From the IMG/VR virus record IMGVR_UViG_3300017987_000001, positions 124,001 to 188,000 of that record: a stretch of 64,000 bases of DNA; one strand, given 5' to 3'. A program made the position numbers and the translations under genes. Under the pieces are notes generated by a model. It did not search any database. It had not been told where the DNA came from and saw nothing but the letters and a program-made list of their open reading frames with translations. Shown here in pieces: positions 6,659 to 49,210 of the stretch (its first letter is position 1; the number at the start of each line of letters is the position of its first letter).

Positions 6659-8152
6659 TTATACCGCTGGTGCCTTCTTCTTCGGAGGCTGCCCGGGCAA
6701 CGGCTCAGTCTTGGTTGGAGCAGGAGGCTGTTCGACATTGGCGCTCGCCGTAGCTGTATCACCCTGCGGCGCCTGCTCCGTCTCGGCTACCTGCGGCTTC
6801 TGCGGATCCTGCTGCTGTGTCGTTGGTTGAATCCAGTCAGTGCCTGCGGGCTGATTCACGCCCCACATATGCCCGCCCGGCGACTGGATCTGAATCGAAC
6901 CGCCTTCGGCCATCGTTCGGTTCGCCAAATCTTGGAAGCTGCGCTGGAACTTCTGCTCACGCTGCGCCACGGTCGAAGGCTGTGCAGGCTGTTGCGGCGG
7001 ACGCGCAACCGGCTGACGGCTGATTCCGCGCGTGCCCGCGCCCTGCCGCCCACGTCGAGAGCGCGGGGCGTAGCGTCCAGAGGTGAAGCCACTGTACGTA
7101 TGCCCTGCGGACTGACGCGGACCAACAAGCTCTTCATTCAGTCGACGCTGCTCGGTGGTTACATCGCGCGCGAAGTTGACGAGATCACCCATGCCGCCTT
7201 CGAGCTGGCTCGGGCCGCCCTCAGTCATGCGACGACTCGCTGCAGCGATCTGGCCGGGGCGGAAACGAATGCCTGCGCGAGCGAACAGCTGCTGCAGCGC
7301 ATCGCGGCGCTGGCCGTGCCGGTGCACCGCACGCACGGCCTCTTCACTGAAGCCTAGTCGCTTTGCTTCCTCATTCATGTGCTGAATGGTCTGCTCGCGC
7401 GTCGGAGGCTTCGGGCGAGTATCAGCGAACGGAGCGTCGGTCTTGGTGCGCTCCGTCGTAGTCGGCGCGGGATCACTGACCTGCACCGTCGAGCCCATCT
7501 CGCCGCCCTCGCCACCGCCGGAGAGCTTCTTGGCCTTCGCTTCGGCGGTAGCAACGTCGGTCGGCGCTTCGTCTGCCGCCGGTGTCGTCGTCGGCGGTGC
7601 TTCCGTAGAGTCAAGCGCGCCGTTGTACTGCGACTGGCCAGACTCCTCGTTCAATCGCTTCGCCTCTTCGAGCGAGGGTGCAACCTTGAACGTCTTTCCT
7701 GCCTCACTGGGCATACCATACGAATCGACGAAGCTCTGCGTAACCCAAACGATGTTCTCGGCGTGCGGGTTGATCGATTCGCCGCGCGCCATACGCCCCT
7801 GATTGAGTACTCCAAGGATCTGATCGATCGGAGCAGCTCCTTCTTCTTCAGCGGTCTTCTGGCGCTGCGCGAACCCGGCAGCGGCGTCGCTCTTCTCCTT
7901 GGCAAGCAGATTCTGTGGTGCCCACGAGCCACTCGTCGGTGCGCCATTCTCAGCGCGCTTGCACAGAAACTCACCGGCGGTCTTCACCTGCTGCTCGCGA
8001 TCGTTGAGAACCATCGACGCCACGATCTGCGCACCCGGTACTTCTGGCATAAGTAAGAGGTTGGCGAGCGAGAGCGCATCGTCGGTGTCGTAACCGGCGG
8101 ACTTGCAGAAGCGCAGCACGCCTGCGGTGAATGCCTGCTTACGTTCCATCAT
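6659..8152 (-). CDS. Putative internal virion protein, low complexity
   Basis: Start at MMERKQAF (RBS GGAGG); KQAF, KSAG, KTAG, KRAE motifs in the N-terminal region. Confidence 0.7.
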   Translation of the reverse strand: MMERKQAFTAGVLRFCKSAGYDTDDALSLANLLLMPEVPGAQIVASMVLNDREQQVKTAGEFLCKRAENGAPTSGSWAPQNLLAKEKSDAAAGFAQRQKTAEEEGAAPIDQILGVLNQGRMARGESINPHAENIVWVTQSFVDSYGMPSEAGKTFKVAPSLEEAKRLNEESGQSQYNGALDSTEAPPTTTPAADEAPTDVATAEAKAKKLSGGGEGGEMGSTVQVSDPAPTTTERTKTDAPFADTRPKPPTREQTIQHMNEEAKRLGFSEEAVRAVHRHGQRRDALQQLFARAGIRFRPGQIAAASRRMTEGGPSQLEGGMGDLVNFARDVTTEQRRLNEELVGPRQSAGHTYSGFTSGRYAPRSRRGRQGAGTRGISRQPVARPPQQPAQPSTVAQREQKFQRSFQDLANRTMAEGGSIQIQSPGGHMWGVNQPAGTDWIQPTTQQQDPQKPQVAETEQAPQGDTATASANVEQPPAPTKTEPLPGQPPKKKAPAV

Positions 8153-8369
8153 TGACGACCTCCGTCCGAGCCAGCTTGTCGACGCCATAGCGCTTGATGA
8201 CATCGTGGAACTTCTCATCGGAGCAGGTCGTGACGAGAACGTGGTCGGGGCTGACCTGCTCGATCGCAGCGATCGGCTGTCCGAAATTGTCGCGCACGAT
8301 CAGCCACGTCACGCTGCAGTCGAGCACGCGGCCATTGAGTACGCTGCCAATCTGGTAGGTCACCTGCAT
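8139..8369 (-). CDS. Small hypothetical protein (76 aa)
   Basis: ORF track; ATG directly follows the upstream TAG. Confidence 0.65.
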   Translation of the reverse strand: MQVTYQIGSVLNGRVLDCSVTWLIVRDNFGQPIAAIEQVSPDHVLVTTCSDEKFHDVIKRYGVDKLARTEVVNDGT

Positions 8370-10383: not shown

Positions 10384-11283
10384 TTACTTCTTGACCTTCC
10401 TGCGAGCGTACTTCTTCTTGCTGTGCTTTGGTCCGCACTTCGCGGACTTGTCACTCGACCCCTTGAACAGTTCGCTGCCGCCACCGATACCTGCGCCAGT
10501 GAGTCCGCCAAGCGCGAGCGAGCCAAGCGAAGGAGTCATGGAAATCTGATCGCCGATCCCCGGCATCTTGGCCTTGATAAGCAGCTTCGCGAGTAGTTCA
10601 GTCAGCGCTGCAGCCCCTGCTCCGCCAATCGCGCCACCGCCTGCGCCGCGACCAACGCGTCCCCAGTTCACGCCCTCATCCTTCTTTTCCTTCTTGTCGT
10701 CCTCGTCGGCAGCACGCTTACGGAACGCGAGCTTCTGCGCCATGCTGTCGAGCAGGTCGTGGCGGCCAAGCTCCTTGATCGCCGCCGCGACCTTCTTCAG
10801 TCGCTTGCGTCGACCGAGACCCATGAACGCCTGCTTGGTAGCCTCGTCCCGGAACTCGATCTTCAGTGGCATGGATAGGTTGAGCGCGCCCTGCGCGTCG
10901 ACCTTCGCATCCTCGATCGCTTCGACTAGCTCGTCGCAGAACGCGTTCGTGGCTTCCTTGGTGAGCGAGCCAGCCGTCAGCTTCGACAGCGCCTCGGATA
11001 GGCCGTAATCCTCGACGACAACCTCCTGCGCCTTCTGTGCGGCCGACTTGATCGTGACTGGGTGCTTGAACATGACCCTATTCCCTTCCAACGTTCCTCC
11101 CATGGCGGCGCAGGCAACTGCCGTTTCGAGATGCTCTGCAACCTTCGATAGCTCTATTTCGAGCGGCGGTACTTCTTCCTTCTTCCGTCCGACAAGGCTC
11201 TTCGTGAACTTGTCGGCAAGTACCCCCGCGATCTTGATATGATCGCCGGTAGCCTCAGAGATCACAAGATGGATATCACTCAT
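10384..11283 (-). CDS. Putative virion protein with C-terminal glycine zippers
   Basis: Start at MSDIHL (RBS GGAG); many KxA motifs; GAGGGAIGGAGAAAL and LALGGLTGAGIGGG segments. Confidence 0.7.
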   Translation of the reverse strand: MSDIHLVISEATGDHIKIAGVLADKFTKSLVGRKKEEVPPLEIELSKVAEHLETAVACAAMGGTLEGNRVMFKHPVTIKSAAQKAQEVVVEDYGLSEALSKLTAGSLTKEATNAFCDELVEAIEDAKVDAQGALNLSMPLKIEFRDEATKQAFMGLGRRKRLKKVAAAIKELGRHDLLDSMAQKLAFRKRAADEDDKKEKKDEGVNWGRVGRGAGGGAIGGAGAAALTELLAKLLIKAKMPGIGDQISMTPSLGSLALGGLTGAGIGGGSELFKGSSDKSAKCGPKHSKKKYARRKVKK

Positions 11284-11425
11284 CGGACTCACTCCTGTTC
11301 TTCCACGCCGCATCAAACTGCCGACGCCATATCCAGTGCCGCACGGTACTCGCGAGCGCCGGTGTTATCGCTACAACCAACAGAACAACTAGAAGAAAGA
11401 TGTTCAGGTTATCGGTATCGCTCAT
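11276..11425 (-). CDS. Small single-TM membrane protein (49 aa)
   Basis: Start at MSDTDN just after the RNAP stop; hydrophobic IFLLVVLLVVAITPALA. Confidence 0.55.
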   Translation of the reverse strand: MSDTDNLNIFLLVVLLVVAITPALASTVRHWIWRRQFDAAWKNRSESDE

Positions 11426-11426
11426 A

Positions 11427-14400
11427 TCACTTCCCGAACTGCACGGAGTCGCCCACGCGCAGTTCACCCCTCTTGTAAGCGCGCAGGACGTCGGCCTTCG
11501 ACATGAAGGTCTTCACACGCTTGTCCTTGGCCGTCGATGCGAGGTACAGCCCGTGCAGGAACTCCTGCCTTGGGAAGTAGTGCACGTCGAAGTCGGATGC
11601 CGCGAGGAGGTTCCGACTCGGCATCATCTTGTCGACCGCTTCTTCCACCGCCGCCTTGCTCACCGGCACATGGAAATTCATAGCGTCACCGTCGAAGTCG
11701 GCGTTGAATCCCGGCGTCACGATGGGCGGAATCTGCAGCGTGTTGCCCTTGGTGATGATTGGCCACGCCGCCATCATGCCGTAACGGTGAAGCACCGGCG
11801 CGCGGTTGATGATGACCGGCCGACGACCAGTCTCTTCGAGCAGCGCCTTGTACGCCACCTGATCCTGATTCTCGATCGCCTTGGCCGCAGCCATCGCGCC
11901 CATGCCGCGCCGAACGAGGTTGCGCATCACGAACGGACGGTAAAGCACCCACGCCTTGCTCTCGGGGAGGCCGACCTGATCCATGCCAAGACTGGGGTTC
12001 GGCGTGATCACGCCTCGACCAACGGTGTCGACAGCCGCCCCGAGCACCTTCTGCTGATACATGCCCAGCTTCGGGCTCGATCCGAAGATGTGGCGCAGCA
12101 AACCGCCGACCTGCTTCTCCTGCGTCTTCGCAGCGACCGGATCACCGAGACCCGTGACCGCCTTGTATGCCTTGTAGAGCCGCAGGCGCTCGTCACCAAG
12201 CTCGTCGTCGCCGAGATCGTTGCGCAGCTCGCGCAGGTCGTCGTTGACGCTCATGAGATCCGCGTAGAGGTAGTTCGGATCATCCACGAACGTCGTCTTG
12301 TTGAAGGTGGTGATCGGGCGGAAGTTCGGAGGAAGCACCGGAACCTTCGTCAGCATGAGGTCGGACGGCTTCTGTCCCGCCTGCTTCAGCGTGCGCAGGT
12401 AGCCAAGTACCTTCACGGCGTTATCGCGCTTCGCGCCGGTCGCCTCGCGCACCTGCGAGGAGTAGTGCTCGATCGCGTCGTCGACTTTGATACGCTTGAG
12501 CGCGCTCAGGATCGCCTTCGACCCGCGCTCACCGTTCAAGTCGTCGCGTCCGGCAATGATCCGCTCCAGCTTGTTCTGCGTCAGCCCGAGCATGCGGCGA
12601 ATCGGCTCTTCCATCACAGGATTCGGGATAGGCTCAGCGAGGTCGATGTGAGACCAGCGCGTGCCACCATGGCCGCCGGTGAGGCCGACATCGAAGAGGC
12701 CGCCCTTCACCGGCTCCATGGCGTCTCCCGTGACCGTGTCGTTCTTCTTGATCGGTCCGGCGGACATCTTATCGATGTCCTTATCCGTCATGGCAAACAG
12801 ATGCAGCTGCTCGCCCTTCTTCTTGAGGTTGATCCCCGACGCCTGAAGCATGCTCAGGAACTTGTCGTAGATCATCGGAACCTTCGGGCTTGCAGGCGTG
12901 TACCCGAGTCGGAGCGCACGCCAGAAGTCGTCATTGCGCTGCCCGCGCACGAGCTTGGCGTCGCGGATGACATCGGTCGCACCGTGGCTGATGAGCGCCA
13001 TCATCTCGCCGACGCCGATACGCTTCGAGCCTTCTTGGCCGCCACCTGCGGGCATGCCCTCAGCCGTGTACGAGCCGATGTCGCGGCCGGAGAGCTTCGG
13101 CTCGGCCATGTGGTGAAGCTTCATCATGTACGTGTAGCCCGTGAAGACCTTCGGGATCTTCCGACCGCTCACCGGATCATGGATATCCTCGGTGTCGCTC
13201 ATCCCGTGCTTCTGCAGTTCCTTCTTCGCGAGCGTGACATAGCTCTCGTCCATGAAGCCCGGCAGCTTGTAGGGCACGCCGGTCTTCTTCGCGATCTTGC
13301 CCAACGCGGTCTCGATGAGCTGCGCCGGGTTGATACGGCTCACGATGCCGAGCGACGACAGCGTGATGTCGAACGGCTTGCCGTCCTTGTCGTGCGGCAT
13401 CTGATCGTCGGGGATGATCTTCGAGATGACGCCCTTGCCGCCGTAGCGATTGGAGAGCTTGTCGCCGACGTGCATTGGCGAGTACGCCTTCACGATGACC
13501 TTCCAGCCCTCCTTCGTCTTGTCGACATCCGTGACCACGCCTTCCGACTCGTGATCCCACGTCTCGGACGCGTCGCTGTAGAGCGTCTTGCGTGCGCGCA
13601 GCATTCCGCCGCCAGACGGCTTACGCTTGGAGATCGACAGCACCAGCGGATCACCGAACTTCACCTTCGTGCCGATCTTCACGACGCCATTGTCATCGAT
13701 CGTCGACATCTGCTGCTTGTCAAAGGTGCCCGGATAGATCGACATATACGACTTCTTGCCTGCCTCCTGATTGTCAGACTGCTGGTACTTCGTCGTGTAC
13801 ATGTGCTCGCTGGCGAGACGCTTCGCAGCTGACTCACTGAGTACGAGCGCGTCATCGGCGTTGTACCCACGATATGGCAGGTATGCGACCTTCAGGTTCA
13901 TTCCGGAGGCCACTGCCCCTGTGTCGTCGGTGAAGTTGCTTCGAGCGAGCAGCTGACCGGGAGCGACAGGATCTCCAACTCGTACGACAGGAGTGTTGTG
14001 GAGGTAGGTCTTCCGGTTGAAGGGGAAGTTGTTATAGAGATCGTAAGAGACCTTCTCTCCGTCGGCATAGCGCACGACGACCTTATCCTTAGTGATCTCA
14101 GCAACCGACCCCATACCCTCTGCACGAACCGCACCAGCCCGATCACCATAGATCTCCTCGAAGCTGCGTCCCGAACCATCATCGGCGAGGTTCTGAACGA
14201 GCGGAGCCTCGGCATTGCGAAGCGGCAGCGCCTGCGTCGCCATCTTCGCGCCCATGAGCAGACGGCCACCCTTGATCGCACTGACCATGGGGACCATGTT
14301 CGCCGTCGCCGTGAACATGTGGCTCGTGTGCGGCAGCTCGAAGTCGACATCCTTACGCTTCACGTACGCGAGCTTCTTGCCACGGATCATCGCTCGCACT

Positions 14401-16925
14401 TCTTTGCCCTTGCGCGCAAGCTCGCCGGGGAATGCGATGATGCTCTTGGCCATCTTGCTGGCGCTGATGCGGCGCGGCTTGCCGGTCTTCGCGTCGAGCA
14501 TGTCAACGTAGATGTTCCCGTCCGAACCCTTGTACGTCCGGTGCGTGATGCGGCTGTCAACACCAATCTTCATGCCTTCGGGCGCACGAATGGGGTCGAT
14601 CACGCCGAAGTGCGACGGCTGCACGGCACGCGCTTCGTCGGGAACAGCGTCGAGACCGGGCATTCCGCCCTCACCCATGCGGGTGACGCGCACGAGCTGG
14701 TCGAAGATCTCAAGCGGGTTCACCTCTTCGAGCGGAGCTGCGAGACCGCTCTTGAGCAGCACAAGTCGAAGCTGCGGCGAGAGCGCGCCCGCCGGGAACT
14801 TCGAGACGTTGCCCTTGTTGGTAGCACGCCACAGCAGCTTACGGGACATGCCGCCAGCGTCACGGGCGATACGCTCGGCGAAGAGATCCTCGGGGCCGAA
14901 CACGCGCTGAAATGCGAGCGAGTCGCGATCGTCCGTATCCGCCTTGCGCTGGTTGATGTCGATGAGCTTCTTCGTGACTTCGGCGATCACTTCGGGCGAC
15001 AGCTTGTCGATCTTGCGGCCAAGCGTCATCTCGGTCGTGTCGGGGTCAACTTCCATCTTCTCGAAGACACCACGCATCTGAAGACCCATGTCATCATCCG
15101 CGCGCTTCTCCATCGCTGCGTCACGCCCCACGAACTGCACGAACGCGCGCTTGATCTCGTCGACCGGCAGCATGGCCTTCAGCTCTTCGAGCGTGGTGAA
15201 GCGGCGCGGAAGCGTCTTCTCCTTCTTCACGGCTTTGAGCTGCTTCTCGACCTTCGCCTGATCGGCCGCCGGGTTGCCCTTGATGTCCTGATTGGCCTGC
15301 TGCTGACGCTCGATCAGCTGCATCGGCTCTTCGTTCTCCATCATCTCTTCGGCGGGCATCGACATGTCGACAACATCGGCGAGCTTCGTCGCCATCGCGC
15401 TCTTGACGAGCGTGTCGGAGATCGCTTCCTCAATCGCGTTCGTCACGGCAAGGAACGCGTTGGCCGTCTTCTCCTCGACGCCGTCGAACAGCGCTGCGAT
15501 CTTCGAAGCGCCACGCGGCTGCTTCTTGGGCTTCACGGCGACGGTGATGTGGAACTGGAACTCCTTGCCGCTGTCATCGCCGCGCGGAAGCTCCTCGAAT
15601 CCGAGCGACTTGCGATGAGCACGCAGCTCGGGCGACTTCGCTTCGAGGAACCATACGCGATCCATCTCATCCCAGCCCTCGGGGTCGAGATCGACGATGG
15701 CGTTCTGCAAACTGAAGGGGAACTTGCGGCCATTACCGCATGCGGTCTTCCACTTCTTGCCGTACTTCCCGATCAGCTGCTTCGCTTCCCAGTTGCGCAG
15801 AACGCTGATGTGCGGGAGATCGAAGCGCGACTCGCAGTCGACGTCCTGATCCTTCAGCGCCTGATACGCAGCCTCGGGCAGTCCCTTGTGGATCTTGAGG
15901 TACGCCCACGGCTTGTCCGAATCCGAATCGTCGCATACCAGCTCGCCGACGAACTTCGCGCGGCGGCGGTTACCTTCCTCGTCCTCCTGCGCAGCCTTGG
16001 CGAACTTGAACTCGCTGCCCACCCAGAGCATGCACCAGCCGGTCGGCGCGACGAAGCCCTGCACCCGGCGGCACGCGTTGACGCCGTTGAAGTTCTTGCA
16101 GCTGGAGCACTGCTGGAAGAATCCCGACATCGTGTAGTTCACGTCGCCCTTGGAGGTCTTGCCGTAGCCGACGTGCTCCTCGGAGTAGCCAAAGAACGCT
16201 GCCTTCTCGGTAGCGTCGGTGTCCTGCTGCTCGGGAGGGGTCTCCTCGGGCTTCTTCGAAACAAGCTTGTGATACGCGCGCTGAACGGCACGCGGGTCGG
16301 ACGCAGCAACGTTCGCCTGCAGCAGGTCCGGTCCCCACGTCTCGTTGAGCTTGCGGTCGTCGTAACCCATCGAGCGAAGGATCGGATAGAGCTTGAGGTT
16401 CGCCTGCCCGACGTTCATGCGGAAGACGCCGGTCTCCGGCTCCATGTAGACCCTGAAGCTGCGCCCCGTGCCACCCTTGACGTTAAAGTGGGCCTCGATG
16501 ATGCCGTTGTCCTTAACTCGACTGTAGATGCCGGGGCGCAGCCTCATTTGGGACGCTACGGTATACTCGTTGCCGTTGAAGACGAACGTACCACGATCGG
16601 TGAGATACGGAACCTGAGCGATGAGCCGTTGGTTAGTCTTGTCGACAATCTTGCCGGATGCGTTATCGACAAGTTCCCACCGACCAGCGAGCTTCCATCC
16701 GAGCGTCTGGCCGCGCATGATCGCCCGCTTCTGCTCGGAGTTGGTGTACTGCTTCGGCTTCACGTACTTCACGTCGTTCAGCCGCAGCGTGTAGCGCTGG
16801 TTCGTCATCGGGAAGCGCTCTTCGATCGCCTTCTGCACGTTCGTGAACAGAAGCTGGCGCGTCGAGCGCACGTCGTCGAACTCACGCATCGTAGGTTCGT
16901 TGGGAGCAGCGATTACGTCGGCCAT
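11427..16925 (-). CDS. rpoBC: Multisubunit RNA polymerase: beta fused to N-terminal half of beta', with a ~370 aa internal insertion
   Basis: beta motifs GTFVFNG, HFGVIDPIRAPEG, RLLMGAKM, GYNADD, GDKLSNRYGGKG, YMMKLHH. beta' motifs VPVLPPNFRP, NRAPVLH and catalytic NADFDGD. Confidence 0.97.
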   Translation of the reverse strand: MADVIAAPNEPTMREFDDVRSTRQLLFTNVQKAIEERFPMTNQRYTLRLNDVKYVKPKQYTNSEQKRAIMRGQTLGWKLAGRWELVDNASGKIVDKTNQRLIAQVPYLTDRGTFVFNGNEYTVASQMRLRPGIYSRVKDNGIIEAHFNVKGGTGRSFRVYMEPETGVFRMNVGQANLKLYPILRSMGYDDRKLNETWGPDLLQANVAASDPRAVQRAYHKLVSKKPEETPPEQQDTDATEKAAFFGYSEEHVGYGKTSKGDVNYTMSGFFQQCSSCKNFNGVNACRRVQGFVAPTGWCMLWVGSEFKFAKAAQEDEEGNRRRAKFVGELVCDDSDSDKPWAYLKIHKGLPEAAYQALKDQDVDCESRFDLPHISVLRNWEAKQLIGKYGKKWKTACGNGRKFPFSLQNAIVDLDPEGWDEMDRVWFLEAKSPELRAHRKSLGFEELPRGDDSGKEFQFHITVAVKPKKQPRGASKIAALFDGVEEKTANAFLAVTNAIEEAISDTLVKSAMATKLADVVDMSMPAEEMMENEEPMQLIERQQQANQDIKGNPAADQAKVEKQLKAVKKEKTLPRRFTTLEELKAMLPVDEIKRAFVQFVGRDAAMEKRADDDMGLQMRGVFEKMEVDPDTTEMTLGRKIDKLSPEVIAEVTKKLIDINQRKADTDDRDSLAFQRVFGPEDLFAERIARDAGGMSRKLLWRATNKGNVSKFPAGALSPQLRLVLLKSGLAAPLEEVNPLEIFDQLVRVTRMGEGGMPGLDAVPDEARAVQPSHFGVIDPIRAPEGMKIGVDSRITHRTYKGSDGNIYVDMLDAKTGKPRRISASKMAKSIIAFPGELARKGKEVRAMIRGKKLAYVKRKDVDFELPHTSHMFTATANMVPMVSAIKGGRLLMGAKMATQALPLRNAEAPLVQNLADDGSGRSFEEIYGDRAGAVRAEGMGSVAEITKDKVVVRYADGEKVSYDLYNNFPFNRKTYLHNTPVVRVGDPVAPGQLLARSNFTDDTGAVASGMNLKVAYLPYRGYNADDALVLSESAAKRLASEHMYTTKYQQSDNQEAGKKSYMSIYPGTFDKQQMSTIDDNGVVKIGTKVKFGDPLVLSISKRKPSGGGMLRARKTLYSDASETWDHESEGVVTDVDKTKEGWKVIVKAYSPMHVGDKLSNRYGGKGVISKIIPDDQMPHDKDGKPFDITLSSLGIVSRINPAQLIETALGKIAKKTGVPYKLPGFMDESYVTLAKKELQKHGMSDTEDIHDPVSGRKIPKVFTGYTYMMKLHHMAEPKLSGRDIGSYTAEGMPAGGGQEGSKRIGVGEMMALISHGATDVIRDAKLVRGQRNDDFWRALRLGYTPASPKVPMIYDKFLSMLQASGINLKKKGEQLHLFAMTDKDIDKMSAGPIKKNDTVTGDAMEPVKGGLFDVGLTGGHGGTRWSHIDLAEPIPNPVMEEPIRRMLGLTQNKLERIIAGRDDLNGERGSKAILSALKRIKVDDAIEHYSSQVREATGAKRDNAVKVLGYLRTLKQAGQKPSDLMLTKVPVLPPNFRPITTFNKTTFVDDPNYLYADLMSVNDDLRELRNDLGDDELGDERLRLYKAYKAVTGLGDPVAAKTQEKQVGGLLRHIFGSSPKLGMYQQKVLGAAVDTVGRGVITPNPSLGMDQVGLPESKAWVLYRPFVMRNLVRRGMGAMAAAKAIENQDQVAYKALLEETGRRPVIINRAPVLHRYGMMAAWPIITKGNTLQIPPIVTPGFNADFDGDAMNFHVPVSKAAVEEAVDKMMPSRNLLAASDFDVHYFPRQEFLHGLYLASTAKDKRVKTFMSKADVLRAYKRGELRVGDSVQFGK
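15520..15960 (-). other. 2H phosphoesterase-like domain inserted in RNAP beta
   Basis: Two H-x-[ST]-hydrophobic motifs: PHISVL (H372) and FHITVAV (H459), 87 aa apart. Confidence 0.75.
16023..16146 (-). other. HiPIP-like 4-Cys (putative Fe-S) domain inserted in RNAP beta
   Basis: CSSC-x8-C-x11-WC-x2-W (..PTGWCMLW) matches the HiPIP cysteine spacing. Confidence 0.65.
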
Positions 16926-18016
16926 CAGATCGGCTCCTCCGCGATTGTCTCTTTCTCGCCCGGATCTTTACGGTACGCCACAAGCGGCGTCGGTGTGGCA
17001 AGTGCGCGCCGCTTGAGCAGCCGCTCCAGTGTCTGCGAACGCTTGCGTCCTTCGTCATGCTTCTTCGCGTAACGCCACGCGCCTGCACCGGCCGCGCCGG
17101 TCAGCATCATCAGGCTGAGCAGGTAGAGTCCGGCAATCCCGCTTCCGGCTCCGGTCCACGGCCCCGGTGTCGTAGCCTCGACCGGATCACCCCAGCCTTC
17201 GCCATTAGCCTTCTTCTGCATGATCTCGGCAATCTTCGTGAAGTTGCCGCGCGAGAAGATATCGGCGAGATGGTCGACCCGCTCGGCGAGACTCGCGACC
17301 TTCTGGCCACTGTACTCGGATTCGAGCGCTTTCTGGAACTCTTCTTCTGCCTGCGCACGCTCGCGCTCGATGCGCTTCTTGCGTAGTTCGTCGTAGTGCT
17401 TGCCCGCGAAGTGCGACGTGAGTCCAGCTGCAGTGATCGGCAAGCCGACAAGCATCGACGCGCCGAGCGGATGGGTGATCGGATTGTCGGTGGGTTGGAA
17501 GAGATTCCCGAGCGCGCCCTTGAGATCCATGCCGCCGAGCAGGTTCTTGACGTACTTGTAGATCAGCGGCGACATCAGCGCGCCGCCCGCAAGTGCGATC
17601 GGCAAGCCGTAGCCCGCTTCCTTCTCGCTCGCGGCTTTGATGGGTACTTCAAGCTCCTGCTTCGGGAGCTTCAGCTTCGCGCCCGCTCGCTCGGTATCGA
17701 GATACTCGGTCATGAGCTTCTTGCGTCGCTTCTCGGCCTTCTCGAAGCTTCGCTTCTTCAGTGCAGCCACGAGTGCAACCGCCGGTATGCCGAGCAGAGC
17801 ACCGCCGCCGACGGCCTTCAGGAAGCTGCGCCAGCCCACGGGCATTCCACCGATGTCGCCACCGAGCCCCTCGACCTCCTTCGCGAGGTCGCCGCTGGCG
17901 CTGAAGCGGTCAACAACGTCGTCGAGACTGAGTTCGGCCTCCTTCAGCATCTCATCGCTGATAGGGGCACCCTCGGTCTCGGACGCCTGCTTGATTGCGA
18001 GTGCAAGCTGTCCCAT
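16925..18016 (-). CDS. Putative virion/ejection protein with four Gly/Ala-rich hydrophobic segments
   Basis: Start at MGQLAL; hydrophobic segments alternate with basic helices; KQAS, KEAG, KVAS, KIAE, KKAN motifs. Confidence 0.7.
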   Translation of the reverse strand: MGQLALAIKQASETEGAPISDEMLKEAELSLDDVVDRFSASGDLAKEVEGLGGDIGGMPVGWRSFLKAVGGGALLGIPAVALVAALKKRSFEKAEKRRKKLMTEYLDTERAGAKLKLPKQELEVPIKAASEKEAGYGLPIALAGGALMSPLIYKYVKNLLGGMDLKGALGNLFQPTDNPITHPLGASMLVGLPITAAGLTSHFAGKHYDELRKKRIERERAQAEEEFQKALESEYSGQKVASLAERVDHLADIFSRGNFTKIAEIMQKKANGEGWGDPVEATTPGPWTGAGSGIAGLYLLSLMMLTGAAGAGAWRYAKKHDEGRKRSQTLERLLKRRALATPTPLVAYRKDPGEKETIAEEPI

Positions 18017-18017
18017 A

Positions 18018-18374
18018 TCAGAACCCTCTCTGCGGGTTGTACACATACAGATCGGCCCACCGCAGGAAGACACGCCAGTTCTTCGTCTCCGGATCGTACT
18101 CCCGGTCCTCAGCAGAGATGACTGCATGCCCGTTGGAGTACATCGTGTAGATGTCCGCCATGCGCTTGCGATCCTTCTCGTCACTCATATCGAGAATCTC
18201 GACGTGAGCACGCACGCCCTGCTTGGGCTGCATATGATCGGGATCGTCGTTCTTCAGGTCGGGCACATGGCCACGGAACGGGAGACCGTCCATGCCCGGA
18301 AGAATCGCGGGCATGTCGCGCTGCCCATTGGATGGATCGATCAGCTTGCCGTCGATATCCCAGCGATCAGCCAT
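18018..18374 (-). CDS. Hypothetical protein (118 aa)
   Basis: ORF track; tightly packed in the operon. Confidence 0.7.
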   Translation of the reverse strand: MADRWDIDGKLIDPSNGQRDMPAILPGMDGLPFRGHVPDLKNDDPDHMQPKQGVRAHVEILDMSDEKDRKRMADIYTMYSNGHAVISAEDREYDPETKNWRVFLRWADLYVYNPQRGF

Positions 18375-19831
18375 CAGATCTCCACCCCTCCTGCGGTCAT
18401 CGGAAGAATCTTGTTGTGCGCGTCGTCGGGCTGCGTCTCACCCTCTGCCTCGCGCTCCTGCGGCTGATTCTTCTTCGCACGGCGTTCAGCCTGCCGCGTG
18501 AGCCGCTTGTAGAGCGCCATGCGCTCAACGTGCCGCAGCTCTTCCGGATCAAGCGTAGGCTCCCGAGAGAGCGAGTATGCGGCGGTCGAAGCACCGGCAC
18601 CTAGGAGCGGAATGCCTGCAGTGGGGATGAGAAACGTGAGTATGGCGAGGTTCTTCGCCAATCCCCCTCCCTGCCGGATGATCTCCGCGAGTGCACTCGT
18701 TTGCGCCGCCTTCTCCAGCGCGCCATCGAGTTCGCTCGGCCGGATACCCGCCTCGGCGAACTTCTCGTAGAAGCCGTACTTGAACGCATTCTTCTTCAGC
18801 TTCTCGACGTCACGATCCTTGCGCTCCTTGTTCTCCGTGTGCTTCTTCGTTCCTTCGCCGACCGCCTCGATCTTCCCCTCGTCGACAGCGTCTTCCATAC
18901 CCTTTTCGAGATCGTCGAGTCGCGGCTCGTAGTAATCGTCTCCCTCTGTGAGGTGATCTTTCGCAATCTCCTGTGCCACTGCCGGATTGCTCGTGTGCTC
19001 AAGCTCTACTTCGGTGCCCTTCTCGATCTGAGCCTTCGGGAACATCGACGTGGGCATACCGGCGGCGAGTCCGCCGGGAATCACGTCGTCCTTGCCACCA
19101 ACGAGCTTGGCGAGGAGGCGATAGATCTCCTCCTCCGCCTCATGCTCGTCGACGCCGAGTGACTCTGCTTGCTGGTGGAAGCCCTCGTCGTCGATACCCT
19201 GTCCCATCTGCGTGATGTAGTTCACGAGCTGCTGTAGGATCTCGGGCGGCAGCGACTCTTCAGCCTCGTGCTCGGGCGATTCGATCTCGCCTTCCTCGTG
19301 CTCTTCGCTTTCATCCCCGTTGGCACTCTTCACGACGTACTCGACGAAGCTCTGCATCTTCGGCATGCCGCTGATGCCCTGCAGCGCCTGTGCGAGCGAC
19401 GGAGCTGGCTGCGACGGCCCATTGAGGCCAAGCAGATTGCTGGGCGCTTCGGGCGTGCCGGGAGCGGCCGGTCCCATAGCCGACGGGTTGCCGCCCTCTT
19501 CGACGACCTTCTCCTCAGGCGTGCGGTGAAGCCCGGGGTAGCGCAGCTCTTCGATCATGCGCCGCCGACGATCGGCCTTCTCGGCCTCGTTCTTCTGAGC
19601 AATAGCCTGCAGAAGCGGAGCTTTCTCCATAACCGTGCGGAAGTCCTGCCCCTTCAGCGCTTCGAGCGCGTCGATGCCGATGCCCTTCTGATCGAGCTTC
19701 CTCATGCGCTCGGTCATCGTAGGCGTGGGCATGCCGCTCATCGGCTGGACGCCGGGTAGCCCCGGCATACCTGCGCCGATGTTCGCCTGCTTGAGGTGAT
19801 TTTTGAACGCGTCCAACAATCTCTGGGGCAT
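18374..19831 (-). CDS. Acidic putative virion protein with DUF5661-like segment and C-terminal TM
   Basis: KGTEVELEHTSNPAVAQEIAKDHLTEGDDYY resembles DUF5661; KQAN, KSAN, KNAF, KAAQ motifs. Confidence 0.7.
   Translation of the reverse strand: MPQRLLDAFKNHLKQANIGAGMPGLPGVQPMSGMPTPTMTERMRKLDQKGIGIDALEALKGQDFRTVMEKAPLLQAIAQKNEAEKADRRRRMIEELRYPGLHRTPEEKVVEEGGNPSAMGPAAPGTPEAPSNLLGLNGPSQPAPSLAQALQGISGMPKMQSFVEYVVKSANGDESEEHEEGEIESPEHEAEESLPPEILQQLVNYITQMGQGIDDEGFHQQAESLGVDEHEAEEEIYRLLAKLVGGKDDVIPGGLAAGMPTSMFPKAQIEKGTEVELEHTSNPAVAQEIAKDHLTEGDDYYEPRLDDLEKGMEDAVDEGKIEAVGEGTKKHTENKERKDRDVEKLKKNAFKYGFYEKFAEAGIRPSELDGALEKAAQTSALAEIIRQGGGLAKNLAILTFLIPTAGIPLLGAGASTAAYSLSREPTLDPEELRHVERMALYKRLTRQAERRAKKNQPQEREAEGETQPDDAHNKILPMTAGGVEI
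19799..19820. promoter_or_regulatory. 22 bp palindrome copy 2 (ATTTTTGAACGCGTCCAACAAT)
   Basis: Consensus match; intragenic. Confidence 0.7.
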
Positions 19832-19842
19832 GGGGCTGCTCC

Positions 19843-21816
19843 CTATCGCATGAATGGGCTACCGGGGGACTGCGCTGCGGGCGCTCCCCGGAAGTAGCCC
19901 ATGATACTCGAAATCGTGTCGAGAATGTTGCCCGTATCTCGGATTGACTGCGGCTTCGTGCCGAGCAGCATACTCAGCAGATTCTCTCTGAGACCGAACG
20001 GCTTCGCGGGCGCCGGGCCGCCCATCCAATGCGGCTTCGCCGGAGAGCCGCCGCCCATCCACGCAGGCTTCTGTGGTCCGCCACCGCCGAGCAGCCCACC
20101 AAGGAACGCCTGCTTCAGCAGCCCAGCCGATTCGTGGACCTTGTCCCAATCGACCGAAGCTGCATGCTCGAAAATGGATTGTAGTATCGTGATCTTCCCG
20201 GTCTTGGGGTTCATGTAGATGTCCCCAGCCTCTGGGTTCTCTGGGTCAAGCGGTCCCAATCGAATCGAATCTTCTTCATCGTCATCAAAGCGATGCGCTC
20301 CTGCATCGACTGCGCGTTGATCTTCTTTCCACTGCTCTTCATCCTCGTCGGGTTCCTTCTTAGAGAATGGCCAGAGCGCTTCCTTCAACAGGATGCCTGC
20401 GTAGTCGGATGCTTTCCTCATGTCTGGATAGTCCTCGTGAATGGAGATCAGTCCGGGCGCGCGGTACGCCCCACTCGGGAACTGACCCTGTGCCTTGATC
20501 CGAGCAATCCGACCAAGGAACTCCTCCGGGTTCTTCAGCATTGCCCGCCGAAGATCCTCGGAGAATCCCGTTCCTACTTTACCAACTGCGGGGCCGTCAG
20601 GCGAGAGCGAATACTCGAAGCCGCCCGCTCCGACGCCCTCCAACCGCTTCTCGCCGGGGAAGATGTCCTTCACGAACACGTCGTGCTCGTCGTACAGCTT
20701 GACCTTCGCGGGCTTGCCGCCCTTCTTCGGCCACGCTACAATGCCCTCATGAGTAAGCGGATCACGCCCACCCTTGACATCCTCCCACAGAGCACGCTGT
20801 TCTTCCGGGGTCTCGGCCATTCGTGGGAGATGGAACTTGCCTTCAGGCAGATGCTTGAGGATTTCGCGGACCTTATCAAGGCGCTCGGCAATCGGGACGT
20901 CCATGCCGATGGGCTTCTTGCCGTACTTCAGGATATTGAAGATTGCATTGCGGAGCTGAACGCCCTGCTCGCGCTGCTTCTTCAGCGATTTGCGCGTCGA
21001 GGAGTTAAGAATCCCACCCAGTTCTTGGGGAGGGATGGCACGATCATCACGCGTACCGTAGAGTTCCCCACGGAGAATTGATCCCACGAGATGCTTGGGG
21101 ATGTTGAGGCCAGTAGTTCCTCCAACTCGGTAGGTGTGGACAATAGGTCGGCCAGTCGTTGTCGGCCGGTATGAGAGAACATCGATCTTATCCGAGAATA
21201 GCTTGTAGAGGGCTGCTGCTCCATCGATCTTCTCCATGTGGAGGTACTTCTCGTCGAAGAGCTTCTCCACGTCCTCGGCCGGAACCTTGGCGTACCGAAC
21301 CTTCTTGTGCTTGATGACCTCCGTGGGCGTCGTGTTGATCATCAGCCACGAGCCGCCCTGCGTCTTCTTCGTACGCGGCGAGCCGCCGGTGGGCGGTCCG
21401 CTCTTGCGTATCATCGTGTACATCTCTGGGTGCTTCTTGTGCGTGACCACGAAGTTGATCTTGTTCGGCTCGACCTTCGTGACCAGCACCGTGCCTTTGT
21501 CGTGCGTCTTCACCAGCCCCTTGCCGTAGCCCGACGTTATTTCGCCCTCGAAATTCGCGTAGGCTCCGGTGTGAAGCGGTTGTTGGAATGCTAAAACTTT
21601 CTGCCCCGACTCCTCGGGGAGTTTGCGTGATGCCCAACTGAGAAGTGATGGCTTGCCGCCTAGGTTTGGTCCGAACCGAATATCGTAGTGCGGCCCAGCT
21701 CGGTCAGCTAGGTGGCGCTGGATCACATACAGAAGCTCACGGCCCTTCGGGAGATCCGTAACGCTCCCGAAGCGCCGTGGGTCTGGTAGGCCCGGCGCGA
21801 ACTCAGTCTTGGCCAC
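19843..21816 (-). CDS. LigD-type 3'-phosphoesterase domain fused to ATP-dependent DNA ligase, plus KxA-bounded tail
   Basis: PE motifs IQRH...HYDIRF, H..YANFEG...GYGKG. Ligase motifs EKIDG, GELY, EGIV, KVK and OB-fold GKVGTGF. Confidence 0.88.
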   Translation of the reverse strand: MAKTEFAPGLPDPRRFGSVTDLPKGRELLYVIQRHLADRAGPHYDIRFGPNLGGKPSLLSWASRKLPEESGQKVLAFQQPLHTGAYANFEGEITSGYGKGLVKTHDKGTVLVTKVEPNKINFVVTHKKHPEMYTMIRKSGPPTGGSPRTKKTQGGSWLMINTTPTEVIKHKKVRYAKVPAEDVEKLFDEKYLHMEKIDGAAALYKLFSDKIDVLSYRPTTTGRPIVHTYRVGGTTGLNIPKHLVGSILRGELYGTRDDRAIPPQELGGILNSSTRKSLKKQREQGVQLRNAIFNILKYGKKPIGMDVPIAERLDKVREILKHLPEGKFHLPRMAETPEEQRALWEDVKGGRDPLTHEGIVAWPKKGGKPAKVKLYDEHDVFVKDIFPGEKRLEGVGAGGFEYSLSPDGPAVGKVGTGFSEDLRRAMLKNPEEFLGRIARIKAQGQFPSGAYRAPGLISIHEDYPDMRKASDYAGILLKEALWPFSKKEPDEDEEQWKEDQRAVDAGAHRFDDDEEDSIRLGPLDPENPEAGDIYMNPKTGKITILQSIFEHAASVDWDKVHESAGLLKQAFLGGLLGGGGPQKPAWMGGGSPAKPHWMGGPAPAKPFGLRENLLSMLLGTKPQSIRDTGNILDTISSIMGYFRGAPAAQSPGSPFMR

Positions 21817-21842: not shown

Positions 21843-22412
21843 TTATAGACGAGTGCCGCGAATCAGGCAATATACATCGCGGTTCTTGTCGACGTGGTCG
21901 ATGTCGCTCCAGATGGGGTTGCCTATCCCGAGATCGGACAGGAATGACTCCTCTCGGGCCACGGACTCCTTGTTCATCGTGACGATCGTACCTCCGACAG
22001 CCGTCACGCGCGCCAGCTCTCGTGAGACGGTCTCCCGGTCCTTCGCCGCATTGATGCTCTGCATCGTCATGATGTCGACCACGAGATCGAACGTGCCGTC
22101 GTCGAAGGGCAGCTGGAATGTGTTCAGCGTGACGGGCGTCACGGTCTTGCGGTTGTTGGCCGCTCTGCCCACCCAATCGCCGAAGAGATCCGCTGCCCAC
22201 ACGTGCCCGCACTTCGATGCGATCTGCTGCGTGAACCGCCCGTAGCCACAACCGAAGTCGAGACCGTGCGTGTAGAAGCCCGTGAGCACCTTCGTCAGCT
22301 CGGCCCCAATGATGGTGCCCTGCCGCACGTGATCCTCACCCACGTGGCCCACGCACTTGTCGCCGAAGCGCTTCTTGCGATCGGTCCAGTATTTCAGCGT
22401 GTCGGAGAACAT
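21843..22412 (-). CDS. Class I SAM-dependent methyltransferase
   Basis: GLDFGCGYG motif I; FDLVV motif. Confidence 0.85.
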   Translation of the reverse strand: MFSDTLKYWTDRKKRFGDKCVGHVGEDHVRQGTIIGAELTKVLTGFYTHGLDFGCGYGRFTQQIASKCGHVWAADLFGDWVGRAANNRKTVTPVTLNTFQLPFDDGTFDLVVDIMTMQSINAAKDRETVSRELARVTAVGGTIVTMNKESVAREESFLSDLGIGNPIWSDIDHVDKNRDVYCLIRGTRL

Positions 22413-22413
22413 G

Positions 22414-23343
22414 TTAGTCCTCGGAGATCGTAGGATATACGTACCACTGAATGGTCTTGTGCAGCCCTTCGAGCAACTTCATCTTCGGCTCGAACTTGAG
22501 TGCTTCGCGCATCTTCGTCACGTCGAGCACCTTGCGCGCCGCGCCGTTGGGCTTCTCCGTATCCCAGACGACCTCGCCCTTGTATCCGGTCAGCTTGACG
22601 ATCTTCTCCGTCAGTTCCTTGACCGTCGTGCCGATACCGGTGCCGATGTTGATCGTACCCATCGCCAGCTTCTCGTAGGCGAGGAAGATGGCATCGGCAG
22701 CGTCGTCGACGTACATGAACTCACGGATCGGGCTTCCATCTCCCCAGCACTTCACACTGGGCTTGTCCTCCTGTACGGCTTCAATGAAGCGCGCGATGAG
22801 CGCACCGACGACATGCGAGCGGTAGATCGTGAAGTCGTCGTGCGGGCCGTAGAGATTCGTGAGGATGGCCTGCCCGCCCATGATGCCGTGCTGCTTGCGA
22901 TACTGCCGCTGGCAGACCAGATGGATGCGCTTGGTCATGCCATAACCCTCGACGGACTCATGGCACGGCCCAGCTTCGAGATTCTCCTCGACGAGGTCTT
23001 CCCCCACGTCGCCCGGGTAGGCGCACGCTGAGCCGACAGAGAAGACCTTCTTGATCTTCATGCGCGCGGCAGCCTCCCACACGTTCAGCGCCATGATCGA
23101 GTTGATGTGGAACATATCGGCAGGCTGGTACATGTTGATGCCGATGCCGCCGTAATAGGCTGCCGAGTGAAGGATACCGTCGACGTGCTCGTGCCGCTGC
23201 AGGTAGCGGCAGACACTGTTGAGGTCCATCAGATCCATCTCGGTCGAACGCGGCGCAAGAACCTCGATGTGCTTCTCCTGTCTGAAGCGACGCACGAGCT
23301 TCTGTCCCAGAAAGCCTGACCCGCCAGTGATCAGAATAACCAT
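22414..23343 (-). CDS. fcl: GDP-L-fucose synthase-like epimerase/reductase (extended SDR)
   Basis: TGGSGFLG, SACAYP, YGMTK, NLYGPHD, WGDGSPIREFMYVDD, KPNGAARKVLD. Confidence 0.85.
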   Translation of the reverse strand: MVILITGGSGFLGQKLVRRFRQEKHIEVLAPRSTEMDLMDLNSVCRYLQRHEHVDGILHSAAYYGGIGINMYQPADMFHINSIMALNVWEAAARMKIKKVFSVGSACAYPGDVGEDLVEENLEAGPCHESVEGYGMTKRIHLVCQRQYRKQHGIMGGQAILTNLYGPHDDFTIYRSHVVGALIARFIEAVQEDKPSVKCWGDGSPIREFMYVDDAADAIFLAYEKLAMGTINIGTGIGTTVKELTEKIVKLTGYKGEVVWDTEKPNGAARKVLDVTKMREALKFEPKMKLLEGLHKTIQWYVYPTISED

Positions 23344-23987
23344 CAGTTCCTCCTCGTGAAGATCGCATCACCCCAGAAGTCGGGGGTCGACCCCGGCTGG
23401 AAGTGACGCAGTGTGAATCCCTGCTCGTTCATGTACTTCTCGATCTCGGGCAGCAGCTTCGTGCCTTTGTACAGCGGCTTGAGCCACGCCTCACAGATGA
23501 CCAGCTTGCAGTTCTCCAGCGTCTTGAGCGCTCCAAGCAGCACCTCGTAGTCGTGTCCCTGCACGTCCGTGACCATGACGTCGATAGGCGGCAAATTCAG
23601 CATGTCGATCGCCACTACTGCCACAGGGATCGTCGTATGGGTGCGTATCGACCGAAATCGCTTCTTCGCTATGTCCTTGTCCAGCGGGTGAAGCGACGAG
23701 CATTCGAGCGGGACCGTCGAGTACCACGGCCGAACGCCTGCCCGATCCGACACGATCTTCTGCAGGCATACGACATCCGGGTACTTCTCGCCGATCACCT
23801 CGGCGTTCGACGAGTCGCCCTCGACGCACACGATCTTCGCGTTCCACTGACGGTACGCTTCGATCTCCTGCCCGATACCAGCGCCTACGTGAAGAATCGT
23901 AGGTTCGTCTTCCGGCTGGATCTCTGCCAGCCGCATCCCGATGTCGATCAACGCTGGCACAACTTCCCTTCGATCAGATAGTGCCAT
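23343..23987 (-). CDS. FkbM-family methyltransferase
   Basis: LHVGAGIG, VCVEG, DVMVTDVQGHDYEVLLG, WGDAIF; start uncertain. Confidence 0.85.
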   Translation of the reverse strand: MALSDRREVVPALIDIGMRLAEIQPEDEPTILHVGAGIGQEIEAYRQWNAKIVCVEGDSSNAEVIGEKYPDVVCLQKIVSDRAGVRPWYSTVPLECSSLHPLDKDIAKKRFRSIRTHTTIPVAVVAIDMLNLPPIDVMVTDVQGHDYEVLLGALKTLENCKLVICEAWLKPLYKGTKLLPEIEKYMNEQGFTLRHFQPGSTPDFWGDAIFTRRN

Positions 23988-24736
23988 CCGAAGAGCCTTT
24001 CGAGTGCACGGAACAGGTGATGAGGCATCCACCGCCATGGCAATGCCTGCCTGTACTCGTGCCGGACGTACTCCGGGATGCTCCACGAGAAGATATGTTC
24101 CTTGCGTGCGCTCGTCAGCTCGAAGTGCGGTTCGAGCAGCTTGCGTACCCCGCGCTTCGTGTAGGTGTACGCTACAGGAACGCCGGGCTGGGCCTCGCAC
24201 GTTACGCTGCTGATGAGCATCTGCAGCGACTTGATCGAGTACTTGGCGTACAGCATGAGCTTCAGCACGGTGTCAGGACCGGCGAAGTTCGCCAGCTCCT
24301 GCATCGCACGATCCGGACTCGGCGTGTGGTGAATCACTCCGAACGAGTAGATGAGATCGTACGGATACGGATCGACGGTCCGGCTCAGCTCCTCGCAGTT
24401 CGCCTGCTTGAGCACCACACGATCCTCAAGACCGTACGCCTTCACGCGCTTCTCGGTGAGTTTCAGGCTCTCCGTGGAGAGATCGACGGCAGTCACGTAT
24501 GCACCGGCTCGCGCGAAGCTGACGGTGTCAGTGCCAATGCCGCAGCCGATCTCCAGTACGTAGCGATCCTTCCATCTCGGGAATTCGGCGAACGTGGGAA
24601 TGTGCGGCTCGACGAAGTACTTGCGCTTCTCGACCTGATCGAAGTACTCACGCGTCCCGACGGGGGCCGTGCCGTGTCGGATGTTGCACGGGCGCGCGTC
24701 CCAGAACTTCTGGACCTCCTCGATGGTTGCGGTCAT
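23948..24736 (-). CDS. Class I SAM-dependent methyltransferase
   Basis: Start MTATIEE (ATGA overlap); VLEIGCGIGTD, YDLIYSFGVIHH. Confidence 0.88.
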   Translation of the reverse strand: MTATIEEVQKFWDARPCNIRHGTAPVGTREYFDQVEKRKYFVEPHIPTFAEFPRWKDRYVLEIGCGIGTDTVSFARAGAYVTAVDLSTESLKLTEKRVKAYGLEDRVVLKQANCEELSRTVDPYPYDLIYSFGVIHHTPSPDRAMQELANFAGPDTVLKLMLYAKYSIKSLQMLISSVTCEAQPGVPVAYTYTKRGVRKLLEPHFELTSARKEHIFSWSIPEYVRHEYRQALPWRWMPHHLFRALERLFGWHYLIEGKLCQR

Positions 24737-26419: not shown

Positions 26420-26422
26420 GAC

Positions 26423-32297: not shown

Positions 32298-32298
32298 G

Positions 32299-49135: not shown

Positions 49136-49210
49136 TGGAACGTCCGGCGGGGGTCGAACCCGCATCTTGCGCCTTTAGAGAGCGCCGCACTCCCATTGTG
49201 CTACGGACGT
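49136..49210 (-). tRNA. tRNA with CUA anticodon (amber suppressor), CCA encoded
   Basis: Manual cloverleaf: ACGTCCG/CGGACGT acceptor, GCAC/GTGC D arm, GCGCT-CTCTAAA-GGCGC anticodon arm, GCGGG-TTCGACC-CCCGC T arm, U73, CCA; 75 nt. Confidence 0.93.

Follow-up and report, generated by a model that had tools for sequence, protein, structure and literature searches.

The stretch of DNA analysed here (the window) comprises 64,000 nucleotides (nt) of IMG/VR virus record IMGVR_UViG_3300017987_000001, positions 124,001 to 188,000. Its minus strand carries the gene for a subunit of a phage RNA polymerase (RNAP), a fusion of beta with the N-terminal half of beta', in which the beta sequence is interrupted by two foreign domains and a charged linker. 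Beta domains (Pfam Rpb2_6, E = 6e-58; Rpb2_3, E = 2.5e-6) and beta' domains (Rpb1_1, E = 2.8e-12; Rpb1_2, E = 3.3e-25) were found in the 1832-amino acid (aa) protein. Together with the NADFDGD metal site read in the translation, these Rpb2 and Rpb1 domains identify it as a multisubunit RNAP beta/beta' protein, the C-terminus of which lies ~90 residues past NADFDGD. The identical protein is encoded on three contigs (up to 207,878 bp) from different sources. The parts of the gene, and the gene that completes the polymerase, are the following.

11427-16925, minus strand: beta fused to the N-terminal half of beta', 1832 aa, stop TGA (open reading frame, ORF, and Pfam matches)
16197-16925, minus strand: N-terminal piece of beta, residues 1-243, containing GTFVFNG; its last residues are the first K-x-A motif (K241-A-A243, nt 16197-16205)
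15990-16196, minus strand: module 1, HiPIP-like four-cysteine domain, residues 244-312, terminating in the double K-x-A KFAKAA (nt 15990-16007)
15495-15989, minus strand: module 2, predicted 2H phosphoesterase, residues 313-477, terminating in K475-I-A477 (nt 15495-15503)
15099-15494, minus strand: helical acidic linker, residues 478-609, with the last K-x-A, MEKRA, at nt 15099-15107
11430-15098, minus strand: C-terminal part of beta and N-terminal half of beta', residues 610-1832, starting with the conserved flank VFEKMEVDPDTTEMTLG, followed by DDRD, Rpb2_6 and Rpb1_1/Rpb1_2
3628-5490, minus strand: separate gene, which supplies the missing C-terminal half of beta' (620 aa; PHROG RNAP matches, Pfam Rpb1_5, homologue of Salmonella phage Arash gp216)

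The original prediction, made from the sequence of the window, had placed an interruption of beta at residues ~240-610 (positions 15099-16208, i.e. residues 240-609), and comparison with relatives agreed with this placement. The nearest annotated phages for this RNAP were Vibrio phages D69, D181 and D148 and Salmonella phage Arash, which aligned in two blocks over ~80% of the query with ~31% identity. The alignment to Arash gp206 was interrupted at query residues ~233 and 611. A protein search recovered ~80 members of the RNAP family, and the segment between two fixed anchors (query residues 223-650) was 428 aa in the present protein and 138-624 aa in 39 insert-bearing relatives, against nearly always 44-60 aa, typically 48-49 aa, in 42 insert-less relatives with proteins of ~1450 aa. 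Therefore, about 370-380 aa have been inserted. The C-terminal flank (...VFxKMELDPxxTxxTLG) was found in all relatives, with or without the insert. In 50,697 phage records, tblastn found no match to the insert, and a scan of IMG/VR returned only three distant loci.

Profile-profile alignment (hhalign) to bacterial RpoB placed the insertion site, at low local confidence, in the beta lobe, just C-terminal of the SI1/beta-i4 gap and just before the helix matching E. coli residues ~375-390. A remnant of the lobe domain Rpb2_2 (Pfam) adjoins the insertion site in relatives. The content of the insert is enzymatic, unlike the structural repeat modules of SI1-type bacterial inserts. For the original prediction, which would be contradicted by an alignment of the region to a normal lineage-specific insertion of beta, this outcome is divided: the position beside the SI1 site, read at low confidence, speaks against it, and the enzymatic content, in place of repeat modules, speaks for it.

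The two foreign domains and the charged linker that had been read from the translation could all be recognised. The HiPIP pattern was taken as four cysteines in the arrangement C-x2-C-x8-16-C-x12-13-(W)C, which bind a [4Fe-4S] cluster; the cysteines of module 1 are C273, C276, C285 and C298. This module matched the small HiPIP PioC (6xyv; phmmer E = 2e-4) with all four cysteines aligned, and it matched the NCBIfam iron oxidase Iro with E = 1.4e-6 (28.5 bits against a cut-off of 100 bits). No match to the Pfam HIPIP family was found. AlphaFold 2 (AF2) modelled the module with low confidence, and because of this poor model we call module 1 HiPIP-like, with putative cluster binding, short of proof of a cluster. 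The linker (residues 478-609) was modelled as acidic helices with moderate confidence and matched no Pfam family.

Module 2 carries two H-x-T/S motifs, HISV at H372 and HITV at H459, and both histidines are invariant across 34 sequences. It was modelled with a predicted local distance difference test score (pLDDT) above 90, and its best PDB matches by Foldseek were all 2H enzymes, namely Usb1, poxvirus cGAMP phosphodiesterase (PDE), CPDase, a Burkholderia-phage phosphodiesterase and the anti-CBASS nuclease Acb1. The two motifs and the duplicated alpha+beta fold of 2H enzymes thus place the module in the 2H superfamily. Its Pfam match was to 2H-SAK (PF22547; E = 1e-4, 19.4-22.7 bits, below the gathering threshold of 27 bits), with a further sub-threshold match to 2_5_RNA_ligase2. 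Standalone and N-terminal relatives scored 28-48 bits with 2H-SAK, above the threshold. An exhaustive search yielded 394 representatives of this 2H type, many of which stand alone or lead large multi-domain proteins that score above the 2H-SAK threshold. The module looks catalytically intact, and phosphoesterase activity is predicted for it. By analogy with its structural matches, it may degrade nucleotide second messengers as Acb1 does, or process RNA 2',3'-cyclic ends; the pairing of 2H with a HAD-type phosphatase in relatives would fit RNA end-healing. Beside the RNAP block, a 657-aa ORF (19843-21816, minus strand) contains an ATP-dependent ligase-like region. Two RNA ligases were reported in Arash virions (PMC10585845). 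The ligase-like ORF could be connected with a healing of RNA ends in which the 2H and HAD modules take part.

An intein was considered for the insert and rejected. The RNAP protein has no match to the Hint families (PF14890, PF14528, PF07591) or to LAGLIDADG, and the insert begins with Phe-Phe-Gly and terminates at Lys-Arg-Ala/Asp, without the Cys/Ser...His-Asn boundaries of inteins. The statement of the original prediction that splice motifs are missing was thus upheld by both the domain searches and the boundary residues. Inteins and homing endonucleases do occur in the RNAP gene of relatives, the inteins at other places in the gene.

The modules and the linker are bounded by the tripeptide motif K-x-A, at each boundary in the form [L/M/H]-x-K-x-A. 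Every site that had been listed is present exactly where it was reported: K241 (EKAA), K307/K310 (KFAKAA), K475 (SKIA), K486 (EKTA), K508 (VKSA), K514 (TKLA) and K607 (EKRA); the linker contains one more at K592 (IKRA). The insert has 10 K-x-A sites against 4.0 expected (P = 0.003), while the remainder of the 1832-aa protein has 9 against 9.4 expected. K393, inside the 2H fold, is the only K-x-A site within the confidently folded parts of the AF2 model.

The same bias was found in the inserts of the 39 insert-bearing relatives, where K-x-A was the top X-x-Y pattern (284 occurrences against 131 expected), ranking above conserved patterns of the 2H fold. In the RNAP cores of an 18-relative subset, its frequency was as expected (85 against 83.5). 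At the C-terminal junction (within 35 residues upstream of the C-terminal flank), K-x-A was present in 36/39 insert-bearing relatives but in 2/42 insert-less ones, and at the N-terminal junction (first 45 residues of the segment) in 37/39 insert-bearing relatives. The K and A of linker K-x-A columns were the best conserved positions (mean 0.45 against 0.24, P = 0.001), and where the Ala was substituted it was replaced by Ser or Gly. In the multi-module inserts inspected, K-x-A lay between nearly every pair of modules (SET, HAD-like DxDGT, DUF5661, Zn ribbons, and an extra domain in P0002) and preceded the leader of the 2H module (...K-x-A-x-IGAKESDRKW), the exception being P0025 with K-E-G. 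Other multi-domain 2H-SAK proteins showed a weak K-x-A excess (500 against 373), indicating that the motif belongs to this phage group and not to the 2H family. An origin of the K-x-A sites by chance or composition was rejected on the basis of shuffling, both global and within 20-aa blocks, of the reverse pattern A-x-K as a control, and of an unbiased scan of 400 patterns.

In a tree built from the flanks alone, every insert-bearing protein fell in a single clade (Shimodaira-Hasegawa-like approximate likelihood ratio test, SH-aLRT, 90), for which one gain of the insertion suffices. Inside this clade the content class of the insert changed at least six times, including a loss of 2H, and the cargo ranges over 2H, SET, HAD-like DxDGT, DUF5661 and Zn-ribbon domains. 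As read from these sequences, the insertion is one that was gained once, after which modules were swapped repeatedly while the K-x-A separators stayed. Both expectations of the original prediction for relatives, variable cargo between constant K-x-A ends and conservation of the ends themselves, were borne out by these changes of content and by the junction motif in 36-37 of 39 relatives. In the window, a 485-aa ORF (18374-19831, minus strand) has a DUF5661 domain, the same domain that is an RNAP-insert module in relatives P0023 and P0030, indicating that modules are common to the RNAP slot and stand-alone genes. The RNAPs of relatives P0002 and P0003 begin with an in-frame GNAT acetyltransferase.

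The beta gene is naturally split at the insert in at least one relative. On contig L011 (4177-11337) it is broken into three ORFs, of which the first encodes beta-N followed by a tail with many CxxC Zn ribbons, the second 149 aa, and the third 2H with beta-C/beta'-N. The beta-N ORF continues as ...QEKQA-D after the beta flank, and the third ORF begins at the 2H leader, MEKDA-YIGARESDRKW. On a second contig, an HNH homing-endonuclease gene lies directly upstream of a 2H-led beta-C ORF and follows a 333-aa ORF that reaches the contig end. This 333-aa ORF is probably beta-N, and the second relative thus appears to be split at the insert as well. These splits suggest that the polymerase can work as two polypeptides broken at the insertion site.

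We then compared the motif with the head proteins of the same phage, using a 99.99% identical contig of the same genome (L004) that extends beyond the window start. The head module consists of a 489-aa candidate protease, a 453-aa Ala/Glu-rich scaffold-like protein, small internal proteins and a 304-aa major capsid protein. In six head-module proteins, K-x-A ranked first of 400 X-x-Y patterns (65 occurrences against 23 expected, z ~10), and the enrichment held under 20-aa block shuffles. The next-ranked patterns were M-x-K and H-x-K, giving a consensus of [L/M/H]-x-K-x-A. Counts of K-x-A against the reverse A-x-K in head-module proteins were 17 and 4, 12 and 2, 9 and 1, 15 and 3, and 7 and 1. 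Metabolic enzymes encoded in the window showed no K-x-A excess. The motif was also top-enriched in the head proteins of Salmonella phage Arash and in those of Vibrio phage D69 (42 against 15.8 expected, z 7.7); in phage G the enrichment was weak. The capsid protein, with more than 1,700 homologues in metagenomes at E <= 1e-10, has K-x-A at a fixed N-terminal position (e.g. GMEKTA-QD) in 107/108 distinct N-termini. A 389-aa protein (L004:10852-12021) with 17 K-x-A sites spaced ~12-20 aa apart and a 122-aa protein (L004:17431-17799) with seven are likely heavily processed internal head proteins, judging from the density of the motif. Three ORFs flanking the RNAP gene in the window (6659-8218, 10384-11316 and 16925-18184, minus strand) have 7, 10 and 8 K-x-A sites (z 2.4-2.8). 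None of these K-x-A-rich neighbours, which may likewise be head-internal or ejected proteins, matched Pfam; a weak holin-like, membrane-like segment was seen in the RNAP-flanking ORF of 419 aa.

The 489-aa candidate protease is a homologue of Arash gp222. Its gene (L004:14514-15983) lies ~14 kb past the window start and, as is canonical, precedes the scaffold-like and capsid genes. It has a PHROG match with E = 0.0046, and 17/44 members of its family match 'head maturation protease' (best 2e-7). With phage G gp19, annotated as a head maturation protease (PMC12484599), it shares 32% identity. An invariant K237-x-A239 directly follows its protease domain, as also in phage G gp19, which fits auto-processing. 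Ser168 and His117 of the candidate protease are invariant as well.

The RNAP genes lie within a block of structural genes, with the portal gene at 33903-36677 and the head module downstream. In purified particles of Arash, the beta homologue Gp206 gave the most spectra of any protein, and the beta' piece and a sigma factor were likewise detected (PMC10585845). The RNAP of the present phage is a phage-encoded multisubunit polymerase that is probably packaged in the virion. Among the other genes of this block, the portal gene (minus strand) encodes 924 aa, against 579 aa in Arash, and contains a ~320-aa insertion with a weak match to Pfam Intein_splicing, which is therefore probably an intein. 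Nucleotide-sugar epimerases, a UDP-glucose dehydrogenase and several methyltransferases are clustered between the RNAP and portal genes (21843-33866, minus strand) and may serve glycosylation or modification of the DNA or virion.

On balance, we favour the interpretation that this is a virion RNAP whose beta lobe serves as a cargo slot and is processed by the head protease. Since the pieces of the insert are bounded by the motif of the head proteins, the polymerase probably also acts as a vehicle for enzymes that are freed in the capsid. The precursor would be taken into the prohead along with the rest of the polymerase and cut at K-x-A sites by the head maturation protease, for which the 489-aa protein is the candidate. 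The products would be beta-N (~243 aa), the HiPIP-like domain (~69 aa), the 2H domain (~165 aa), small linker peptides and beta-C/beta'-N (~1223 aa). On the same model, the mature form of Arash capsid protein Gp226 would start after LVKEA. Beta-N and beta-C/beta'-N would remain assembled non-covalently, and the polymerase and the freed cargo would be ejected with the DNA and enter the cell together on infection. The 2H enzyme might then act early in the host, either by degrading nucleotide immune signals or by healing or processing RNA ends.

Several points weigh against this interpretation. Cleavage at K-x-A has no proteomic or biochemical support in any phage, and a literature search of incomplete coverage did not find a Lys-x-Ala motif for a head protease. 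The assignment of the protease rests on weak profile matches, and searches of Pfam and of PDB sequences and profiles gave no match for it. In the capsid protein, the whole stretch around K-x-A is conserved, and the constancy of the motif there carries little weight on its own. All insert-bearing proteins share a common origin, and part of the conservation at the junctions is thus inherited and not independently maintained. The authors of the Arash study caution that abundant enzymes may co-purify with the particles (PMC10585845). Finally, the insertion maps next to the position of bacterial SI1 in the lobe, where inserts normally remain attached, and the N-terminal GNAT fusion of P0002/P0003 has no K-x-A at its junction.

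The last two points bear on the strongest alternative, an ordinary lineage-specific insert of the lobe that stays covalently attached, with the 2H and metal-cluster domains working in cis with the polymerase, for example on the ends of nascent or host RNA or by offering a surface for regulation or docking, and with the linker trimmed at most. Lane and Darst (2010) reportedly found that lineage-specific inserts at such beta sites are the rule in bacteria. Because the insertion is in the lobe beside such a site (E. coli SI1, beta-i4), this attached, cis-acting alternative keeps weight, and we consider it unlikely but by no means negligible. Enzymatic domains on phage RNAP beta are also known, such as the HD domain in AR9-like phages (PMC7824862), the RNAP core is not depleted in K-x-A, and the GNAT fusion lacks the motif. 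An attached insert leaves unexplained, however, why a head-protein motif flanks the modules in 36-37 of the 39 relatives and is missing there in the insert-less ones, why the gene can be split at the insertion site, and why module content turns over freely. A different possibility is that K-x-A is functional but not cut, acting as a capsid-targeting, scaffold-binding or lysine-modification motif that steers the RNAP with its attached modules into the prohead. The K-x-A statistics show selection but not what reads the motif, and SET and GNAT domains, which act on lysines, are fused to the RNAPs of relatives. However, the 17 sites at ~12-20-aa intervals in the 389-aa head protein resemble the multi-cut propeptides of the T4 and phiKZ type (PMC5694885), the K-x-A following the domain of the candidate protease fits auto-processing, and the replacement of Ala by Ser or Gly is as expected of a small P1 pocket; we regard a non-cleavage role as improbable. 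Least probable, and in effect refuted, is an artefact or selfish element, whether a chimera of the assembly, an intein or an Ala/Lys-rich linker composition arisen by chance. The inteins and homing endonucleases of relatives lend it some colour, but it is opposed by the identical ORF on three contigs from different sources, by the lack of Hint or LAGLIDADG matches and of intein boundaries, and by the persistence of the K-x-A enrichment under local shuffles and in the reverse-pattern control.

Taken together, the observation behind the original prediction was confirmed, and its interpretation as a polyprotein cut by a phage protease was partly supported: the motif that tops the head proteins of three lineages, the gene splits and the abundance of the RNAP in Arash particles argue for it, and the lobe site beside SI1 and the GNAT fusion lacking K-x-A argue against it. 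A further extension of the processed virion RNAP is that the lobe is an evolvable delivery slot, in which enzymes lying between [L/M]-x-K-x-A separators are freed by a Lys-x-Ala-specific protease and injected in a fixed ratio for counter-defence or takeover before phage gene expression. The activities delivered would be 2H phosphoesterases, SET methyltransferases, HAD-type phosphatases and metal-cluster domains. We propose this extension tentatively, as a possibility that falls somewhat short of probable. The original prediction had suggested that the arrangement is undescribed, and in keeping with this, a literature search of incomplete coverage found no description of enzymes inserted in a phage RNAP lobe or of a 2H insert in an RNAP, and nothing of relevance on the 'Swiss Army Knife' proteins. 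If the modules are released in the capsid, this would be the first essential polymerase subunit to serve as a vehicle for injected effector enzymes. It would also mean that the head protease of a very abundant and almost uncultured phage group has a new specificity (Lys-x-Ala), the K-x-A motif could be used to predict processed or ejected proteins across these genomes, and the slot would offer a natural template for putting cargo into capsids. A 2H phosphoesterase and a HiPIP-type domain within an RNA polymerase are unusual even with the insert still attached.

At the gene for the C-terminal half of beta', the ORF (3628-5490, minus strand) stops at TAG, and a 422-aa ORF (2350-3618) follows in the same frame 9 nt on. 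By gene order the latter is the counterpart of Arash gp217, a 'helicase', and no sequence match to Arash was detected for it. The window contains a tRNA with the anticodon CUA (amber suppressor; 49136-49210, minus strand), labelled tRNA-Pyl by ARAGORN. The suppressor tRNA could permit a read-through fusion of the C-terminal half of beta' and the 422-aa ORF. Despite this tRNA, TAG is the ordinary stop in 15 of the 45 minus-strand ORFs of the window.

Contigs from the same metagenome were described in a study of the mReC lineage, which does not mention the inserts (PMC7481178). The mReC capsids matched a T4-type Pfam family (PMC7481178), whereas the capsid of the present phage did not. In T4, internal proteins and scaffold are cut by gp21 at L/I-x-E and carry capsid-targeting sequences. 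As in the present phage, head-internal proteins are enriched in a short motif, and proteins that T4 ejects are freed by cutting within the prohead. However, the motif and the protease family differ, and T4 involves no polymerase in this process.

The virion RNAPs of phiKZ-like phages (phiKZ, 201phi2-1, SPN3US) are likewise multisubunit beta/beta' enzymes consisting of several polypeptides. They travel in the head and are ejected to carry out early transcription, as the present polymerase probably is. In 201phi2-1, a 275-residue N-terminal propeptide of virion RNAP beta is removed by the prohead protease (PMC5694885). That removed part is a terminal propeptide, whereas internal, folded enzymes would be released here, and the motif is S/A/G-x-E in place of K-x-A. 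Moreover, the phiKZ-like subunits are split between genes, whereas beta is here fused to the N-terminal half of beta'. The present phage belongs to a group distinct from the phiKZ-like phages, with Arash and Vibrio phage D69 as its nearest cultured relatives at 31% identity; none of the insert-bearing phages is in culture.

E. coli SI1/beta-i4 (residues 225-343) has a surface-exposed position in the beta lobe, as the present insert appears to have, and both are missing from relatives. Bacterial beta inserts are repeated structural modules that stay attached, whereas the insert described here consists of foreign enzymes of variable content bordered by a protease-type motif. Severinov et al. are said to have found in the 1990s that E. 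coli beta tolerates splitting in the dispensable SI1 region.

The 2H module shares its fold and two H-x-T/S motifs with standalone 2H enzymes (Acb1, poxvirus cGAMP PDE, the 2',5'-phosphodiesterases rotavirus VP3 and coronavirus ns2, Usb1, LigT/ThpR), although their identity to module 2 is 10-16% and its closest sequence family is Pfam 2H-SAK. Among the polyvalent proteins of Iyer et al. (2017), 2H domains recur as effector domains packaged in the head (PMC5512222). These proteins are strings of two or more conflict-related effector domains in one polypeptide, delivered with the DNA and in some cases proteolytically processed. The inserts of relatives, which combine SET, HAD-like, DUF5661, 2H and Zn-ribbon modules with putative effector roles, would resemble them in composition, with the RNAP as an atypical carrier. 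The usual carriers are MuF, portal or other head proteins cut by built-in peptidase domains, whereas here an essential polymerase subunit would carry its cargo internally, between separators that correspond to the presumed motif of the head protease.

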